Source: Cyanophora paradoxa CCMP329 (lineage: Eukaryota > Plantae > Glaucophyta). From it: DNA of 64,000 bases. The notes below the pieces were generated by a model. That model saw nothing but the letters and a program-made list of their open reading frames with translations. It was not told where the DNA came from and did not search any database. Location of the stretch: NCBI GenBank assembly GCA_004431415.1, contig QPMI01000230.1:78028-142027 (forward strand), written 5' to 3'. Position numbers and translations under genes: made by a program. Positions 16,588 to 63,608 of this stretch are shown here, piece after piece; positions within the stretch are counted from its first letter, which is position 1, and each line of letters starts with the position of its first letter.

Positions 16588-19500
16588 ATGGACGGTGCGT
16601 CGCGGCGCCTCGTATGTGTGGCGAAGAGCTCGGCTTCGAGCGCTTAGCGGCCCGTCGCCGTCCCGCAGGCTTCTTGAGCAAGCTCCGCGCCGTCGTGAGC
16701 CAGGACCGAAAACGGCTCGTCGACAAAGAGAGCGGCGTCGACCTGTAAGCAATTTCCAACGCCGCCGCCGCCGCGACAGCGCCTCCGACCCTGGCGGCGG
16801 TCATTCTCATGAATCCTATTGCGCCGCGCAGCGACCTCACGTACATCACTGACCGCATCATCGGTACGTCTGCAACGCTTGCGCCGCCTTCAGGCCGCCC
16901 GTAGCGCTCGAAGGAGCGCCGCTAACTCGTGCACGCAGCGATGGGCTTTCCTTCCGCCGGCGTGGAGGCGGCGTTCCGCAAGTGCGCATTCGGCGCTCAT
17001 AGCATTCTCAGGCGCGCGGCATGCGGCGCAGCTGACCCCGGCCGGCCGCAGCGACATCGACGATGTCGCGGCGTTCCTCAACGGCCGGCACAAGGGCAAG
17101 TACATGATTTGGAACCTGAGCGACCGCCGCTACGACTGTGCGTCGCGTTCACCCCGCTCCTCGTCCCCGCCGCCGAGCTCACCCGCACGCCGCAGACACG
17201 AAGTTCGACAACCAGGTAGGGCAGGAACCGCTCAGCGGCGCGCTCCCCGCTTAGCTGTGCGGCCTCAGGTCCTCGAGTTCGGATTCCCGGACCACCACGG
17301 TGAGCCCGGCGGGCCGCTCCCGTGCCGCCTGCCCCTCTCCGCTCCTCACGCAGCGCCCCGCGCCGCGCCGCAGCGCCGCCGCTGGAGATGCTCTTCAAAA
17401 TCTCGAAGTCTATGGACGGCTGGCTCAAGGCAGACCCGCAGAACGTCGCCGTCGTCCACTGCCTGGTACCCCGGCCCCGTCCCGGCCCGCTGCACCCGCC
17501 TACCCCGCCGACCCGCGGGCGGCAGGCGGGCAAGGGCCGGACGGGCCTGGCGGTGGCGGGGTACATGGCCTACGCGGGGATCGCGGAGAGCGGCGCTGAG
17601 GCGCTCCACATGTTCGGCGTGAAGCGCTCCTGGGACGAGAAGGGCGTCACCGTGCCCTCCCAGAAGCGGTGCCCGCCCTGCCCCCCGCGCCGCTCGTGAC
17701 CCCCCGCCAACCGCCGGGGGTACAGCTTCGTCGGCTACTTCACGGACGTGATCAAGGGCCGCCGCGTCCCGCACTGCCGGCCCCTCGTCCTGCAGGCGCG
17801 CGCGCATGCCCCGGCCCCGGCTGCGGCCCGCTCTCGAACGAGCGCCCCCCGCAGCGCATCATCATGAACACCATACCGAAGTTCGACCGCTCGGGCGGCT
17901 GCAAGCCGTACTTCCAGGTGCGCTTCGCACCGCTCCACAAGCTGCCCGCTGCTACCCCGCTTATCTTGCGCCCGTACCCCCCCAGATCTTCCGAAACTTT
18001 GGGAAGACGCCCATCTTCAACTCCGCCGAGCACGGGCCCCTGAAGTGGGCCCCCCGGGCCCCTCCCGGTCCCCTCCCGCCCGGTCTCACGCGGGGCCCGG
18101 GCCGCCGGGGGCGCGCAGGACGTACACGAACAAGGACCTCTCGGTCTCCTTCCAGGTGGAGTGCATCATCCAGGGCAACATCCTCGTCAAGGCGCCCCCG
18201 CCCCGCCATCGGAAGCCAGCGGCCCGCTCGTCCCTGACCGCGCCTCTACGCCAGTTCTTCCACCTGGGGGCCCTCACGACGCCGATCCTCTTCCGCTTCG
18301 CCTTCCACACCGGCTTCGCCGACCACGGTGCGCGCCTCCAGGCTGGGAAGGGGCGGGCGCGGGGCGTGCTGGGGCGGCGCCCGCCCGCGCCCGCCCGCCC
18401 GCCGCGCCTCTCCCTGCTCGGCGGCGGGAGCGGCTCACCGCCTCCCCCGCGTGGCCGGCAGGCGTGCTGCGGTTCACGAAGCTCCAGCTCGACGGGGCCA
18501 CCGACGACAAGCGGTCCGCCCCGCCCCGCCCCGCCCCGCCCGTGGGTCTGCCCCGCCCCGCCGGCCTCACCGGCCTCGCCTCGCAGCTTCGAGGAGGACT
18601 TCTTCATCGACCTCATGTTCGGGCCCCTCCAGGTCCCCTCCCCCGCCCTCCGCTGCACCCGCTGCACCCGCCCGCCCCGAGCGCCCCGGGCGCAGGGCGA
18701 GCTCTCCAAGTCCGCCAAGCGCCAGCTCGCGCGCGAGGAGGCCCAGTGGCACGACATCCTGGTGCCCCCTGCCCCCTCCCCCCGCACACGACGCCCCGCC
18801 GGCCTCACCGCCCCCGCAGGCGGCGCTGCCCATCAACCAGGGCCGCACCGACTTTGAGTACCCCGTCGGCGGCTCCATGTACGCCGCCGAGGCCGGTCCC
18901 AGCGGGGTACAGGTGCGCCGTGTCCCGCGCCATCTCGCATCCGCGCGGGCCTAACGTGCCTCGGGGCCAGGCGAAGCCGGTCGGGGACGCGCCGGGGAGC
19001 CCGCCGCTGAAGCGGCCGCCGGAGGCGGTGTTCGAGCTCTCGGGGGGCGGCCAGGACGACTTCGACGGCCCCGAGGAGGCGGCGGGGGCGCCCGGCGCGC
19101 CCTCCGCGCCCGCGAGGCCAGCCGGCGAGGGCGGCGGCTGGGGCGACGTCCAGTTCGACCTCGGGACGCCCCCGGGGAGCCCCAAGGGCCGCCCCAGCGA
19201 CGCCGCCGCCGACGCCGACGCTGAGGCCGAGGCCGAGGCCGAGGCGAAGGCGGCGGAGGCGGCCAAGGCGGCGGCAGAAGCGAAGGCGGCGACTGAGAAG
19301 AAGGCGGCTGAGGGGAAGGCGGCGGCAGAAAAGGCGGCGGCACAGAAGGCGGCAGCTGAGAAGGCTGCGGCCGAGAAGGCGGCAGCAGAGAAGGCGGCGG
19401 CCGAGAAGAAAGCAGCAGCCGAGAAGGCGGCGGCGGAGAAGAAGGAGGTGGAGGCAAAAGCGGCGGCCGACAAGAAGGCGGCGCAGGAGAAGGCGGCCGC

Positions 19501-20010
19501 GGACAAGAAGGCCGCGGCCGAGGAGAAGAAGGCGGCGGCCGAGGCCAAGAAGGCGGCAGAGGCCTCTGCGGCGGCTGAGAAGAAGGCGGCGGCCGAGAAG
19601 GCGGCGTCAGAGGCCAAGGCCAAGGCCGAGGCAGAGGCCAAGGCGGCGGCCGAGAAGGCGGCGGCCGAGAAAAAGGCGGCTGAGGAGAAGGCGGCGGCGG
19701 AAAAGAAGGCGGCGGAGGAGAAGGCGGCAGCAGAGGCGACGGCGGCGGCGGAGGCGTCGGCGGGGAAGCCGGCGGCGGGGGCGGGGGAGGAGAAGAAGGG
19801 CGGGGCGAGCCTGAAGGCGGCCATCGAGGACCCGGCCAACTTCGAGGTGCCGCGCCCCCGCCTTCGGCCGCCCGTGCCCCGGGCCGAGCTCCCGCGCAGG
19901 CGTGGCTGGACGAGGCGGCGGCCTCGGCGACGGCGCCCTCGGCCTCGCCCCCCGGCGCCTCGGCGTCGGCCGCCGCCTTCTCCCTCGACGACGACGACTT
20001 CCTCTCCTGA
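16588..20010 (+). CDS. PTEN: PTEN-like phosphoinositide phosphatase (phosphatase + C2) with a long Ala/Glu/Lys tail
   Basis: [12 protein letters not shown]...DL|[10 protein letters not shown]|AMGFP; FPDHH|APPL; HCL|AGKGRTG; GVTVPSQKR; C2 region CKPYFQ...QGNILVK|FFH...[10 protein letters not shown]. Confidence 0.9.
19220..19750 (+). repeat. Coding low-complexity repeat, (EK(K)AAA)n charged helix
   Basis: Repeated gagaaggcggcggc-type units translating as [12 protein letters not shown] within the PTEN frame. Confidence 0.9.
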
Positions 20011-54631: not shown

Positions 54632-57600
54632 ATGGCGGGAGCCTGGAGGAGAACTGACTTGGACTCCTTTGACCCGGAGGACCAGGAGGGCCTGGCGTGG
54701 TTCTTTCACTTGGTGCGCCCGTCGCCGAGCGTGCAGCGCAGGCCCGCTCGTCGCTGGAGGCTCACCGCAAGCTGCAGCACGATGAGGTCGATTTGGCGAT
54801 ACGGCTGCTGCGCGTCGTGGCGCGCGAGAAGGCGATCCTCTCGCTCCGCCGGCTGCGCCAGGACGTTGCCCTCAAGATGGAGTCCTCGGACCGGCGATTC
54901 AAGCTTCTGGCTAAGATTTCCGGCATCGGTGCGCTGCAAACGACGCCCAGCCGCCGCGCGAGCGCCGCCGGCGGCCGACTCGCTCCCTCGCCAGACCTGG
55001 GGGAGGAGGACACGCCGCGGCGGGATGCGGGGTCGGAGGGATACGAGGGGATCTACACGGAGCCGGCGACCGTGCGGAACGAGATGCGGTACCAGAGCGA
55101 CTTCGTGGGGCAGGAGATCGACCGCCTCGACCGCGAGCAGAACGAGGAGCTCGACGAGGCGCGCCGCCGCCCCGCCCGGCGCCGCTCGACGCGGCTGACG
55201 CGGCGCAGCTGGCGGGGGCGGCGAAGGAGATGGCGTGGCACGCGAGCCCGAACCAGTGGCGGGAGGACCTGGCGCGCCTCCTCGACCAGTTCCGCGAGCT
55301 CCGCGCCTCCAGCGACGCCAACAACGGCGGCTCCTTCATCGAGGGCGCGCCTGGGGCCTTTGATCTTCCGCTCCCCGCCCCAGCCGCTGAGCTTGGGGGC
55401 GTGGCAGGCTTCCTGAAGGCGGTGCAGTCGGCGGGGGCGTTCAAGCTGCGGGCCCTCAAGAAGCGGGAGAAGGCGACCGTGGCCCTCTATCGCAACGTAC
55501 AGACCGTCCTCGCCTGCCAGGGCAAGCGGTGCGCGCCGGGCGGGCGCGGCTGGGCGCGGTCCGCGGTCCGTCGGGGGCCGATCCTCCCCCTCCCGTGTCG
55601 CAGGTGGGCATTCGCGTGCAGCGTCTCCGAGGGCGAGCTCATCAAGTGCGCGCGCCCCGCCCCCGCCCCCGCCACGCTCGCCGGGGCCGACGCCGCGCCG
55701 GGGCAGGCGGGGCGTGCCCGTGAGCAACCGGCTGCCCCCCATCTTCGAGGACTCGGGCTTCTACCTCCTCAACAAGGTTCGCCGCGCCGTACCCGGTGCG
55801 GCGCGCCGCACCCGCCCGAGCGGCTCCGGCGGGCAGCACTCGGAGCGGAGCATAACGGCGGAGGAGGTGGAGGAGGCGGCCGCCGAGGTCTCCGACCGCC
55901 TCGCCTCCGCCCGCGGCGCCCGCAGCGCCAGCGGCGGCAGCAGCGCCCGCGTGCGCCCTGCCCCTCACAGACGCGTGCACGCGCCGCGCGGCCCTCCGCC
56001 GAGGGGCGTCGGGGCGGGCCAGGAGCGGGAGGCGCGGGAGGCGGAGGCGGTGGCGGCGACGATGGACGAGGCCAAGCGCCGCGCCAAGGCAGGCCGGGCT
56101 TCGCTTCGTCACGCGACCCCGGGCTGAGGGGGCGGGGCCGCGCAGGAGGCGATCGCGCGGCGGGGGGCGCAGGGGGTGACGACACCCCCCTCGGCCTTCC
56201 TCCTCGAGGAGGGGGCCCAGGCCGAGGAGCCCCAGCACGCCGCCTGCGGCACGCACGCCGGCGGCCACGGCCACGCCCACGCCCACGCCCTCGCGTCCTA
56301 CCACCTGAACGGCAACGGCGAGGTCCGCGCCGCCCGCTCCCGTCCCTGCGCCGCGGCCTCATGTGCGGGGGCGCAGCTGCGGGCGTCGCCGCCGCCGGAG
56401 CCCGTCGCGGCCGCCAACGTCGTCGTCGCCTCCCTTTTGGAGGTGCGGCGCGGCCCCTCTCCGCGAGACTCCAGAGGCGGGGCTCGAGCCGGGTCCGGGG
56501 CGGGGCGTGCAGGCGGAAGAGGCGCGGGAGCGACTCGGGGCAAGCCGGCGCGAGCTCGACGAGGTCCGCCCCCGCCCCCGCCCCGCTGATCCGAAGCGGC
56601 CCCGCCGTGCTTGACGCCCCGCCCCGCAGCGGGGGCGCGAGCTCGACTTGGCGATCCGCGCCAAGGCAGGCCCCGCCTGTGCCTCTTCCCCGGCCTGCGG
56701 CTGACTGCGCCGGCGGGGGCAGGAGGCGGCGGAGGAGCGGGCGGAGCGGCTGGCGCGGGAGCGGGACCACCTCCGCCAGGAGGCGCGCCCACCCGCCCCC
56801 TCTCCGGCCCGCACGAGCCGCCCGCGCTGAGCGCCCGCCGCGCGCAGCTTCAGATGGCGCTGAACGTGAAGGACGACATGCAGTCGCGGCGCGACGGTGC
56901 GGGCCCCCCGGGGCTGGCGCGCCGGGGCGCCTACGGTGAAGGCGACGGGGCGGGGCGGCAGGGCTGCTGGCGGAGGCGGCGCAGCTCTCCGACGCCCTCG
57001 CCGCCGCCCTCCGCGAGGCCCGCCCCATAGCCAGCTCCACTCCTTTTTCCTCCCTTACCGTCGGAGGCGGCAGCTGGAGGGGGAGCGGGGGCAGAAGGCG
57101 GAGTGGCGGGCGGCGCTGGAGCGCGAGCGCGCCGAGATGCGCGCCCTCTCCCGCGAGATCGTCCAGGCCCGCCCCGCCCGCCATGCGCCGCCAGCGCGCC
57201 CGGCCGGCCGGCCTCTCACCTGCGCCCGCCCTCAGGTGGCGAACGAGGCGGAGCGCGAGGTGGCGAAGGTCCCTCCTTCCTTCCCTCCCGCTTTCCTCTC
57301 TTCTCCTGGGCGCCGAACCCGCGCGCCTCGCGGCAGGTGCGGGAGCTGCAGCGGGAGAACGCGGCGCTCAAGGCCCGCGCCGCCGAGCTCGAGCGCGCCG
57401 TGCGAGCAGCCCCCGCCGGCCGCCTCCCGCCCGAGCAGGCGCCCCCGCTGAGCCGCCTCTCCGCGCAGATGGCGCAGGGCGTCTCGCGCCTCTCGGGCGG
57501 CGCCTCGTCGCTGCAGGCGGCCCCGAGCCCGAGCCCGCGCCGCCTCTCCTTCTCCGCCGCCCCCAGCAGGGCCGACAAGGAGCTGCAGACGAGCCCGGGC

Positions 57601-58657
57601 CGGGGCGAGGCCCCCGCGCCCGCCCCCGCCTCGGCCTCGAGCAGCAGCAGCGCGGCGGTGGCGGCGCGGCTGGCGCGGCGGGTGGAGGACCTGGAGGAGG
57701 AGGTGGCGCGGGCGCGGGCCGCCGTGGAGGCCCTCCAGCGCGAGCGCGCCGAGGCGGCCGCCGAGCTGCGCTCCGCCCTCACCGCCGAGGCCCGCGCCGA
57801 GGCCCGCAGCAGGGAGGCCGTCGCCGCCATGACCGGCGACATGCGCCGCCTCGCCAAGGAGCTCAACGCCTGCCTCGACGAAAAGGTCCGCGCGGCCGGG
57901 GGTTTGTACTCTAGGCCGAGGGATAATCCTGGAGAGCCTCCCTTGCACCTCTCGCGCCTCTGACCGCCGCCCGCCCGCCCGCCCGCCCCGGCGCAGGACA
58001 CGCTCAAGCGGCAGCTGGACCGCTTGCTCGCCCGCTCGAGCCCCGCCGCCCTGCTGCCCGCCGGCCCCGTCCCACCCCTCCCCCGCTCCTTCCCCCCGCC
58101 CCTCTCCGCGCCGGGCTCCGGCGCCGGTGCCGTCCCGGCGCCGCTGCCGGCCGGCTCCAACCCCCACTCCTCCTCCTCCTCCTCCTCGTCCTCCTCGGAG
58201 CCCGCTCCGCTGCCCCGCGCGCCGGCCTCCGCATTGCACGCGCAGGCCCTCGGCGCGGCGGCGGCGGCTGCTCCGGCGGCGGGGCCGGCCCTGCGGTGGG
58301 CTCGCTGGGGGTCCTCTCGGCGGACGCGGAGGCGATCATACGGGCGAGCCCGCGGCGGCGGCGGCGCTGCAGACGCTCGTGCGCCTCCAGCAGGCGACGC
58401 GCTACCGGGGCCCCTCCAACCCCCCTCCGCCCCGCCCTCCCGCACCGCCTCCCGCGCCGCCTCCCCCGCCCGAGCCCCCGCCCCCGCGCCGCCGCCGCAG
58501 CCCCCGCCGGCCCTGCGGCTCGCCGGACGCCTCGCCGCTGCGGGCGCGGCCGTGCGCCTCGCCGGGGCCCGGCACGCCCTCGCGCGCCGCCCGCGTCGCC
58601 GTCTTCCGGGTGGGGCAGAGCCCCAGCAAGCCCCCGCCCGCCCTTGCCGCCCCGTGA
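54632..58657 (+). CDS. Large hypothetical coiled-coil protein with a Pro-rich C-terminus
   Basis: Spliced frame MAGAWRRTDLDSFDPEDQEGLAWFFHL|LQHDEVDL...; heptads VRELQRENAALKARAAELER and RRVEDLEEEVARAR. A probable 1-nt indel lies near 58340. Confidence 0.7.
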
Positions 58658-58705
58658 CCGCGCGGGCGGACCGCCCACGTCGGCCTCGGCTAGCTATAGG
58701 TAGAT

Positions 58706-60434
58706 TTTTTTTTTTGCAAAAGCCCAACCGGGCAATGGTCGTATTAAAATGACAACAACAGCCGCCCCGTCGGCTTCGTCGAACTGGGGGGGCACCTTAT
58801 CTTGCTCTAAGGCTCTGCTACCATGCTACCACAACTTAGCTAGCAACGTGTTGAGCTGGAGCGGGGAGGTCCTAAGGGTGCTGTCGTCCGTGGCCCTGTG
58901 GGGGGGAGGGGGGAGGGGGGGAGGGCACTTCCGGGGGAAGGGGCGGGGCGCCGGAGCCGGAGGCGGGGGCGGGGCGCTGGAGCCGGAGGGCGGGGGCGGG
59001 GCGCTGGAGCCGGAGGGCGGGGGCGGGGCGCTGGGGCCGGAGGCGGGGGTGGGGCGCTGGAGCCGGGGGCGGGGGCGGGCGCTGGAGCCGGGGGCGGGGG
59101 CGGGGCGCTGGAGCCGGAGTCGGGGGCGGGCGCTGGAGCCGGAGGGCGGGGCGGGGCGCTGGAGCCGGAGGCGGGGGTGGGGCGCTGGAGCCGGGGGCGG
59201 GGCGGGGCGCTGGAGCCGGAGGCGGGGGCGGGGCGCTGGAGCCGGAGGCGGGGCGGGGCGCTTGAGCCGGAGGGCGGGGGTGGGGTGTTGGAGGGCGGCC
59301 GGGGCGGGGCGCTGGAGGGCGGCCGGGGCGGGGCGCTTGAGCTGGGGGCGGGGGTGGGGCGCTGGAGCCGGGGGCGGGGCGGGGCGCTGGAGCCGGGGGC
59401 GGGGTGGGGTGCTGGAGCCGGGGGGCGGGGGCGGGGCGCTGGAGCCGGAGGCGGAGGCGGGGCGCTGGAGCCGGAGGGTGGGGGTGGGGCGCTGGAGCCG
59501 GAGGCGGAGGCCGGCGTGGAAGCCGGGTCCGGGCGAGCCTCGTCTGGCTCGGACTGCGGACGGGGTGGGGGCGCCCGAGCGTACACGTTCCTGTACCGAC
59601 CTCGGGGAGGAGGAGTCCGGGTGGGCGCCCTTTGGGCCCAGGCCGGGGGAGAGGGGGCGGGGGCGTGGGCCCGCGGGGCCTGGGCTCTGGGCGGGGGAGG
59701 AACCGGCGCGGGGCGCTAGGGAGTAGGACGTGGGCGCACCCAGCAGTCCTTGCGCAGTCGTACATCGGACGGCGCCGACGGCCCCGTCGCGCGGCGAGCT
59801 GGTCGAGATCTGCAGGCGCGCGAGCACGTGCTGTAAGGATGGGGCGGCGCGCGCGGCGCCTGTAGCATGGCGGCGGCGTTCGAGGGGCAGCGGCGGCGGC
59901 GCGCGACGGCGGGAGCGTCAGTTTAGAGAGCTGGTGGTCATCGGATATCGGCTATGCGGCGGGTGGCGTGTAAGTGGCCGGGACGGGCCGTGGCGCATGC
60001 ACGGCAATGGCGGGAATCCGGGCGAGGTCTAGGCGGCCGACCGGCGCCGTTTGCGCGTTCTAGAACTGCAGTATTATACCGGGAGCGGCAGCGTGCTATC
60101 TGTACTTCCCGCGCGGGGTGCCGGCGAGGTCCTCGACATTCAAAAAGTGGCTCGGTGATGACGGCGGGGCTCCACGACGCTCCGGGGGCGGGCTGCCGGC
60201 TTCGGCGGTTGTACTGGACGGTGATGTGCTCGTGTCGCCTGGTGGGCTGCGCCCGGCTGGCCTAACTAGCGTTGTCGGTCCACGGGGGTCGGGTGGAGCT
60301 GGCGCGCGACTTTCCGAGCAGCTTGACACGCGGCGTTATCAGGCACCCACGGGTGGGAAGCCTGGCCCGCCGCGCTGCCGTAATCGTCGCGCTACCGCAA
60401 ATTTTCCGTACCCCCCGCTCCCCAAACTTGTATC
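58706..60434 (-). mobile_element. Non-autonomous non-LTR retroposon (about 1.73 kb) with poly(A) tail, 14-nt TSD and internal VNTR
   Basis: AGCTATAGGTAGAT at 58692-58705 and 60435-60448 flanks the segment. A T11 run (58705-58715) abuts the left copy and reads as poly(A) on the minus strand. No RT or endonuclease motif was recognised. Confidence 0.85.
58944..59526. repeat. GC-rich minisatellite (VNTR), about 22-23 units of 24-27 nt
   Basis: Consensus GGGGCGCTGGAGCCGG(A/G)GGCGGGG(G)(C/T) repeated head-to-tail without unique spacers. Confidence 0.95.
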
Positions 60435-60792
60435 AGCTATAGGTAGATATGCATATGTCAGAGACGCATAAGGTTCCGATCCAAGCGGGGAGCGCCGGGG
60501 TCCGAGGTCCGAGGGGCGGGGAGCGTCGTCTGATCGAGAGTCCAGGGTAGTATGTCGCCGAATTCAAAAGAAACGCTGTTCGATTTATTACATGCACTGC
60601 ACTGTACTGATTTATTACATGCACTATGATTTTTGATAACATTGCAATCTGCACTGACTGCATTATTACCTAACTTTATGGCCATAGAATCGAAGAACGA
60701 AAGCGAAAGCAAACACTTAAACGAAATCGAAATAGAAATCTCCAGCAGCAATTTATTACTATAATAATGCGGTCGACGCCGAACGCGATCGC

Positions 60793-63608
60793 CTAGAGCG
60801 CGGCGAGGAGCGCGGCCGCCGCGGCGCTGAGCAGGAGGCCGAGGAGGCCCTACGGCAAAGCTGACTCAGCCCGGCGCGGGCGGCCGGGCGGGCGGCGGGG
60901 CGGGGCGGGGGCGCGCACGGCGGGGGCGGGGGCGGAGGCGGAGACCCAGTAGGTCTTGTCGGGGACGACGTTGTTCGTCACGGGGCTGAACCTGAAGGCC
61001 TGCGTGCGCGGGGGGCGACGGTGAGACCGGGCGGCCGGCGGGGCGGCCGCTGGAGGGGTCCGACGTCGCGCGCGCTCACGTTGCGCAAGATGATCGCGGC
61101 GAAGCCTTCGGGCTCGAGGCGAAGGTTGTACTGTTGAGCGCGTGGCGATCAGCACAGGCGCCTTGCAGGCCCGAGGCGCATACCGGGGTGTTGGGGAGGA
61201 AAAGAAGGTGGCGGCGCGGCAGCACGGGCGGCGCTGCAGCGCGTCGTTGGTGTGTGTGTGTGTGGTGGTGGTGGTGGTGGTGGTGGTGGTGGTGGTGGGG
61301 GGGGGGGGGGGGGGGGGGGGGGGGAAGGTCTGCGCACTGAAGCGGAGCTCGACATCGTTGCCGACCTTCACGAGCGTGACGCCGGTGGCGGGCAACTTGG
61401 TGCCGGCGTTGTCTGCGACAAACACCATGACCCTCTGGGTCTCCTGCGGACGAGCGGTGAGTGAGAAGAGCGGTGAGACGAGCGGTTGTGATCACTCAGC
61501 GAGAAGGAAGCGCACAGTCAACAGGCCCGTGACCTTGAGGGTCAGGGGAGTCGTCCCGTTCTGCGAGGGTGCCCCGTGGGGTCGGCGGCTGCGTGCGGCC
61601 GTGCGGGGCCGCCGTGAGGATTGCCGCGCACCAGCCCGCCCGAAAGGACCTCCTTCACCTCGAGGGCGTAGACCTTCTGCCCCGGGTTCGAGGGATCCTG
61701 CGCTCGCGCACGTCACGCCGCGCGCCTCGGAGCGGCCGGGCGGGAAGCACATCGATCTCCGTGAAGGACGACACGTTGAACTGCGGGGGGCGTCAGCAGA
61801 GCGTTGCAGCCCCGCGCGGCGATCCCGTCCCGCCCGCACCACGGTGCCGCCGATGGTGATGGGCTTGGACGGGTCCGCGAAAACAGCCTGTGCGGGCGTC
61901 GGACAAGGCTGCCTGGAGAGCGGGACGGGGTCCGGAGCGGACCAGGGCGGGGAGGGGCGTCGGGGTGGGCGTCGGCACGGCGGAGGGCGTAGGCGAGGAA
62001 GAGGGCGTGGGCGAGGGCGTGGGCGTCTCGCTGCGACGGCGAACGTCAAGAGGGGCAGGGAGAGAGAGGGGCCCCGGAGCTGCGCGGGGGGGCAGACCTC
62101 GGGGTAGGGGAGGGGGACGGCGTCGAGCTGCGCCGCAGGTGAGCCTTGAGGCGGCGAGAGGGGGAGAGGGGGCGGGTTGGGCGATAGGTGACGGCGTGTG
62201 GAGGCAAGGCTCGAACCTGGGGGAAGGGGAAGGGGAAGGGGACGGGGACGGGGACGGGGACGGCGACGGGGAGGGAGTTACGGCGCAGGTGGCTGCGCGA
62301 CAAGAAGTCAGAGACGGGCGAGGCGGCGAGAGAGCGCCGGCGCACAAACAGTGGCAGTCGCGTTCATGCCGGTGCCGCTGGTGTCACTGCTGGAGGCGAA
62401 GACGACGAGCATCTCGCTGCCGGAGGTCGTATTGTACGTGCCGGTCGCGTTGTTGGTTAGCACGGCAAGCTTGGAGACCGATGAGCTCTGCGCAAGGCGA
62501 GCCGCTGCGTTGAACTCGTAGACCTGCGCACGCCCTCACATCCGAAGTTTTGAAAAACGCATCAATGAATGAACAGCTTACCCAAATTCTGTCCTTGTTC
62601 TCATCAAGCCCTAGACCGGAGATGGCGAGGGAGAGCCGGCTCCCGGCGATGCAGGCCGTAGACGGATCCACCTTCACGTGCCTGTTTTCTCGCGCGCGTT
62701 ACAGATGCTCCAACTTCGTTCGCTCACAATGGGACGGAGTCGACGGACCAGATGCGAAGCCAGTCGGCGTCATATTGAGCGGGGAGGTTGAGCGGCGCCT
62801 GCACGCCGGGCGAGACCGTGACCACAGAGGAGTTGAACTTCACAGGGTAGCTGCCAGACACGAGCTCCGTGGCATTGCTGGCGGCCACTGCGGTGCGCGG
62901 GCGTTCGTGTTTGTAGACTTCGTTCAGGATAGCGTCAGATTGCACCAGTTGAGGGGACGCTCTTGTACGTCGCGTTGAACTCGACCGGGAAAGGCGAGAA
63001 GGGATCGCTGCCAGGTGTGGACGCAAGCAGAAGCAGCGTGTCGGACGAGGTCGTGTACGTTTTCGGGGTCGAGTCGATCCAGGGCGCCAGAAGAGCCGGG
63101 GGCGAGGCGCCGAGGTCGATCACCTGCCGCGCGCACTCATTTCAGTGCGGGCGTACCGGCTTGCTTCAGTGCGGGCATCATACCCGCATTAAATAGCCTG
63201 TACTCGATTCGACAAATGAGTTGAATGTTAGCTGCACGCGCTCCCCTTTCGGCGCTGTAATCGTCCTGGGGGCGTGACGTCAGCTAACTTCACTAAGCGG
63301 CTTCGGTCACCATAGCGCGGCTTCACTAAAGGTCCTTCTAACGGCGAATGCCTCGCCCGGCGGCCGGCTTACTGTACATGTCTAACTTCGCCGGCCGGCC
63401 GCGGCGAGATTCTCGCGGATTAGCCTAGGACGAACCAAACGGCGATGTCGTCATTCGTCGTTGTGTTGACAACAGTGATATTGACTATGAGAGATGTCGC
63501 GGTCGAAGACGCGACGTAGTCGCCGGGCGAGGCGCCTCCGTTATTCGTGATGGCTGCTGAGGCCGCAGTGAGGACTAGGGCGACGAGAAGCGCCCGCAGC
63601 GCAGCCAT
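60793..63608 (-). CDS. Secreted, probably GPI-anchored surface protein with an N-terminal Cys-less CUB-like domain and P/S/T linkers
   Basis: Signal MAALRALLVALVLTAASA; W|TITAPKGERVQLTFNSF...EFNATY (CUB-like); TPSPSPSPSP linkers; hydrophobic C-terminus GLLGLLLSAAAAALLAAL* with no cytosolic tail. Confidence 0.75.
61250..61324. repeat. Compound intronic microsatellite (GT)n-(GGT)n-poly(G)
   Basis: Directly visible. It lies inside a minus-strand GTGCGC...CTGCAG intron of the CUB-like gene. Confidence 0.9.

Follow-up and report, generated by a model that had tools for sequence, protein, structure and literature searches.

A probable recent insertion of a non-coding, minisatellite-bearing retroposon beyond the end of a gene in the glaucophyte Cyanophora paradoxa

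How did a block of GC-rich DNA come to lie between two identical 14-nt words, a few tens of nucleotides beyond the stop codon of a gene in Cyanophora paradoxa CCMP329? The block is found in a 64,000-nt stretch of contig QPMI01000230.1 (positions 78028 to 142027 of the forward strand); this whole stretch is the window analysed here, and its own numbering is used throughout. A first-pass annotation had read the block as a young composite retroposon resembling the SVA elements of hominoids. The C. paradoxa genome paper gives 29.4% repeats, with unknown repeats making up 11.5% of the genome and LINEs 2.47%, and does not contain the word SINE (PMC6704402); according to the methylome, the repeats are heavily CpG-methylated (PMC12344493). 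The repeats of this alga are largely uncurated, and no description of C. paradoxa non-LTR elements was found in the literature. The questions posed by the locus are therefore whether the block was inserted, by what route, and to what kind of element it belongs.

Two exact copies of the 14-mer AGCTATAGGTAGAT were located, at 58692-58705 and 60435-60448, and the repeat could not be extended to the left or right of either copy. No third copy was present in the 64-kb window with one mismatch allowed, and the word was contained in none of 100 dinucleotide-preserving shuffles, even at one mismatch. The insert between the copies spans 58706-60434 (1,729 bp), in agreement with the first-pass annotation of a 1.73-kb segment flanked by identical 14-mers. 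A run of T on the plus strand (58705-58715) was also correctly described as touching the left 14-mer: it comprises 11 T when the final T of the 14-mer is counted, such that the tail proper is an A10 on the minus strand (58706-58715). A homopolymer scan of the window showed this run to be the sole A or T homopolymer of at least 8 nt across 64 kb of DNA with a GC content of 72%. The presence of a single long A/T run, placed exactly at the junction of a repeat, is very unlikely to be due to chance. In the minus-strand reading, the left copy of the target-site duplication (TSD) lies on the 3' side of the element, next to the tail, and the right copy on the 5' side. Inverted repeats of 14 nt or longer, terminal or internal, were not found in the insert.

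The locus thus shows what is expected of non-LTR retroposition: a flanking TSD, an A-tail directly against one of its copies, and neither terminal inverted repeats nor long terminal repeats. Target-primed reverse transcription by LINE enzymes acting in trans is classically marked by a duplication from a staggered cut, an A-tail at one of the junctions, and the lack of inverted termini and of coding capacity. Helitrons and DNA transposons have no TSD or a short one of fixed length, and carry terminal inverted repeats or 5'-TC...CTRR-3' ends; both were ruled out by the 14-bp TSD, the poly(A) end, and the absence of inverted termini.

On the minus strand, the element reads, in order, a unique 5' part, a minisatellite, a C-rich simple run, a unique tail of about 190 nt with a hairpin, and the A10. 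The unique 5' part, head and body together, occupies 907 nt (59528-60434; 67-75% GC) and contains no protein domain and no exon-like codon phase. The minisatellite (58931-59527; 87% GC, C-rich on the sense strand) amounts to a third of the element. Tandem Repeats Finder described it as a 26-nt unit repeated 23.2 times with 85% matches (score 809); when the array was split on its conserved core, 22 units were obtained, 21 of them measurable (eight of 26 nt, six of 25 nt, five of 27 nt, and two of 24 nt). The earlier estimate of about 22 variable units of 24-27 nt was thus borne out. The core of the unit is nearly invariant, and the commonest variant among the units is a G to A change at a CpG. 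The unique 3' tail, 215 nt if the C-rich run at 58900-58925 adjoining the array is included (58716-58930; about 60% GC), holds an A/U-rich patch some 30-38 nt ahead of the A-tail and a hairpin with a 4-bp stem and a 4-nt loop (58722-58733). This is the small hairpin that had been noticed beside the poly(A), and it is too small to carry weight by itself. The structured 5' head that had also been proposed was not recovered: the first 300 nt fold no better than their dinucleotide shuffles (z = -0.32), as is true of the last 224 nt (z = +0.28). The observed/expected CpG ratio of the insert shows no decay except in the short tail, where it is low.

Ten ORFs of 77-333 aa, a consequence of the high GC content, lie open in the insert, and long ones span the array in five frames. 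None of the ten matched Pfam at E <= 0.01, and in particular no reverse transcriptase (RT), endonuclease, or gag-like domain was detected, which upholds the earlier statement that the element has no RT. GC content by codon phase provided a second measure. In the exons of the neighboring gene it reaches 0.96-1.0 in one phase, with a spread of 0.3-0.4; in the unique part of the insert, exon-like phase is absent, no phase exceeding 0.84 and the spread being mostly below 0.2. Within the array, unit lengths of 24-27 nt cause the reading frame to drift. The first-pass annotation had itself named an ordinary spliced, Pro-rich gene as the finding that would overturn its reading; the codon-phase GC of at most 0.84 and the frame drift in the array disfavor such a gene. 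With no Pfam match and no exon-like phase, the insert is RT-less in the manner of non-autonomous retroposons of the SINE or SVA type. A crude motif scan of the window detected no RT-like motif and no LINE.

Searches for RNA genes were equally blank. ARAGORN found no tRNA in the 64-kb window, and no Rfam family was matched inside the insert at E <= 1, whether tRNA, 7SL, 5S, or snRNA; the absence of a tRNA-derived head, asserted previously, is supported by both programs. A classical SINE is shorter than about 600 nt and begins with a pol III head, of tRNA, 7SL, or 5S RNA origin, that carries A and B boxes. The insert was rejected as a member of that class, as no tRNA or Rfam family was matched in it, its length is 1,729 nt, and its sense strand contains runs of T4 and T5 (for example, the T5 at about 60143-60147 and two further runs in the tail). 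Runs of this kind terminate RNA polymerase III. RNA polymerase II, which also transcribes SVA, therefore most likely made the template.

There is good support for target-primed reverse transcription of a non-coding RNA, copied in trans, as the route of insertion, and the following course of events is proposed. A LINE-type endonuclease would have nicked the plus strand after the T at 58705, between that base and the one now at 60449, within an AT-rich patch separating two apparently convergent genes; the empty target site would have read ...GGTAGAT / ATGCAT.... The free 3' end would then have primed reverse transcription on the A-tail of the RNA, with one T only available for pairing, and a second nick 14 bp away would have given rise to the 14-bp duplication. 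With no reverse transcriptase, endonuclease, or gag-like protein encoded in the insert, the enzymes would have come in trans, presumably from a LINE of C. paradoxa. That the TSD is perfect and the A10 pure indicates that the insertion is probably recent.

We therefore interpret 58706-60434 as the product of a recent retroposition of a non-coding, polyadenylated RNA of minus-strand sense, and favor, at slightly better than even confidence, the view that it belongs to a dedicated family of non-autonomous retroposons. Judged from this copy, members of such a family would most likely consist of a unique 5' part, a variable GC-rich minisatellite, a short unique tail, and poly(A). In terms of known kinds of element, the insert is best filed as a non-autonomous, LINE-dependent retroposon. 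Four observations count against this interpretation: one copy was seen in the window and in weak searches of sequence collections; neither head nor tail shows excess folding; the A-tail is short, at 10 nt; and the primer end has only one T to pair.

The search for further copies was made at several levels. A second copy of the insert was not found within the 64-kb window. Homology search with the 333-aa minus-strand ORF (region 1-100) returned no match in a protein collection that includes the EukProt model of the neighboring Cyanophora gene, and exact look-up of ten ORFs with ATG starts, from the element and its flanks, returned nothing. Mixed alignments, one combining five unique-part ORFs and the other the two long ORFs of the array, likewise produced no protein match, although these were improvised profiles for which a blank is weak evidence. 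Exact 23-24-mers of the tail and head were absent from a metagenome collection, and the tail word was absent also from viral and prokaryote-genome collections, all of which are hardly expected to contain Cyanophora DNA.

The two alternatives that share the machinery of retroposition are those that survive best. In the first, the insert would be a 5'-truncated copy of an autonomous LINE, dead on arrival, its 1.7 kb representing the non-coding 3' end of the element with a tandem array. Target-primed reverse transcription as a rule leaves copies truncated at the 5' end, and a TSD, poly(A), and absence of RT are common to truncated LINE copies and the insert, and so are expected equally under either reading. 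No trace of a LINE-related protein was found in the insert by Pfam or by codon phase, a point that weighs only weakly against it. We regard truncation of a LINE as rather unlikely overall.

In the second, the insert would be a processed pseudogene, broadly understood: a one-off retrocopy made when LINE enzymes acted a single time on a non-coding transcript of the host or on a long 3' UTR bearing a minisatellite. LINE machinery of the L1 type, which acts on RNAs ending in poly(A), is known to use cellular poly(A) RNAs as templates in trans. The single copy seen in the window and protein searches is in keeping with such an event, as is the frequency of GC-rich, pentamer-based arrays in this DNA. 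A stretch of 1.7 kb without coding signal would, however, be an unusual remnant of an mRNA, and the insert, at 67-87% GC, does not resemble the adjacent AT-rich UTR and intergenic DNA, at 36-56% GC. We consider a one-off retrocopy unlikely. The last alternative, that nothing was inserted and that the block is a repeat gene (Pro-rich on the minus strand or Gly/Ala-rich on the plus strand) or a UTR, with its 14-mers paired by chance or local duplication, could draw on the long ORFs open in five frames through the array and on the splice-like motifs pointed out earlier near 59740-59860, but is practically excluded by the failure of all 100 shuffles to yield the two 14-mer copies, and the position of the window's sole long T run exactly at the junction. 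It is also opposed by the variable unit length that is not a multiple of three, the lack of exon-like GC phase and of any Pfam match, and the lack of a related protein in a collection that does include the EukProt model of the neighboring Cyanophora gene.

Retroposition of a non-coding RNA having been preferred, the likeness to SVA can be considered. SVA, LAVA, PVA, and FVA form a class described as hominoid-specific (PMC4432496, PMC7353768), and composite retroposons of this type, built around a VNTR, are mobilized by L1 in trans (PMC4432496, PMC7353768, PMC3287187). Like them, the insert is non-coding, falls in the 1.5-3 kb size class, and has a central GC-rich array of variable units (PMC3287187, PMC4432496). 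It also shares with them a unique 3' part, poly(A), a TSD (here of 14 bp), the lack of an RT of its own, a template probably made by pol II, and, by implication, the need to be copied in trans by LINE enzymes. Unlike SVA, the insert lacks a CCCTCT hexamer head, an Alu-like region, and SINE-R or any other known 3' module; its units measure 24-27 nt as opposed to about 35-50 nt in the hominoid VNTR composites, and its host is a glaucophyte alga. Membership in SVA/LAVA was rejected on the grounds that only the VNTR and the poly(A) have counterparts, that no 7SL or Alu-like Rfam match was obtained, and that the host is a glaucophyte. The description of the element as SVA-like therefore stands for the general layout (VNTR, poly(A), no RT), as an analogy only, and fails for the modules that define SVA, none of which is present. 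Since the class is called hominoid-specific in the literature, any likeness of the insert to it would be convergent.

A second comparison lies closer to the protists. EhSINE1 of Entamoeba histolytica has internal repeats of 26-27 bp, and EhSINE2 has 1-13 repeats (PMC3716655). Both resemble the insert in having a protist host, a retroposon body not derived from tRNA, internal tandem repeats, and a TSD, and the Entamoeba elements are LINE-dependent (PMC3716655). The unit length of the insert is nearly equal to that of EhSINE1. In contrast, the Entamoeba elements are far shorter and AT-rich, with few repeats and with known partner LINEs, whereas a third of the insert is array. The Entamoeba precedent for variable internal repeats lowers the novelty of the insert's design.

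The surroundings of the insert bear on its possible effects. Just upstream, the exon-bearing ORF at 57103-57960 is 98% identical to EukProt protein EP00741_Cyanophora_paradoxa_P006316 (861 aa; model tig00000989_g6123.t1). Mapping of this model on the window by tblastn placed the multi-exon, coiled-coil-like gene tig00000989_g6123 at 54644-58657 on the plus strand, with its stop TGA at 58655-58657, 34 nt ahead of the left 14-mer. The insert is antisense to g6123, as the first-pass annotation had stated along with a distance of about 35 nt from the stop. A second plus-strand frame over the last part of the gene (58024-58752) is open through the TSD and the T run, with its stop at 58750-58752 inside the insert, and a third ends within the left TSD (stop at 58701-58703). 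Should g6123 have been published with a wrong last exon or frame, the insertion would change the C-terminus of the protein. Near the end of the gene lies a C-rich plus-strand repeat with a 26-nt period in 3.3 copies (58421-58508), made of the same GCCCC-type pentamers as the array of the insert but on the opposite strand; pentamer arrays recur throughout the window. A long array elsewhere in the window (19202-19836) has a periodicity of 15/18 nt, multiples of three, and an Ala/Glu/Lys-rich translation; it probably belongs to the coding sequence of another gene.

To the right of the insertion site, an AT-rich stretch (60540-60780; 36% GC) contains a 17-nt direct repeat with 27-nt spacing (60582-60625), which may be a UTR or terminator signal common to the convergent genes. 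Beyond it, on the minus strand (60850-61428), an ORF with its ATG at 61428 encodes a protein-like N-terminus followed by a poly-Pro/poly-Thr stretch specified by (TGG)16 and G28 on the plus strand. The (TGG)16 microsatellite and the perfect G28 that directly follows it occupy 61248-61324; a homopolymer of such length is unusual. The ORF resembles a first exon, belonging to a minus-strand gene that would converge with g6123; in that case the insert sits between the members of a convergent pair and in the same orientation as the putative right-hand one. If the ORF is indeed a gene exon, the retroposon, lying downstream in the same orientation, could be transcribed by read-through. On its other side, being antisense in what is likely the 3' UTR of g6123, the insert may alter the end of that gene's transcript.

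A clean, recent, RT-less insertion would mean that the LINE machinery of this early-branching alga has in recent times acted in trans on RNAs other than its own. A bolder proposal, which we advance only tentatively, is that non-coding VNTR composite retroposons, transcribed by pol II and of an origin independent of SVA/LAVA, form an active, multi-copy family in C. paradoxa, and that the GC-rich array functions in their hitch-hiking on LINEs. If such a family exists, the layout of the VNTR composite retroposon, described as hominoid-specific (PMC4432496, PMC7353768), would have had a second, independent origin, beside the small internal-repeat SINEs of Entamoeba (PMC3716655), and the SVA design would be a recurrent solution and not a primate oddity.
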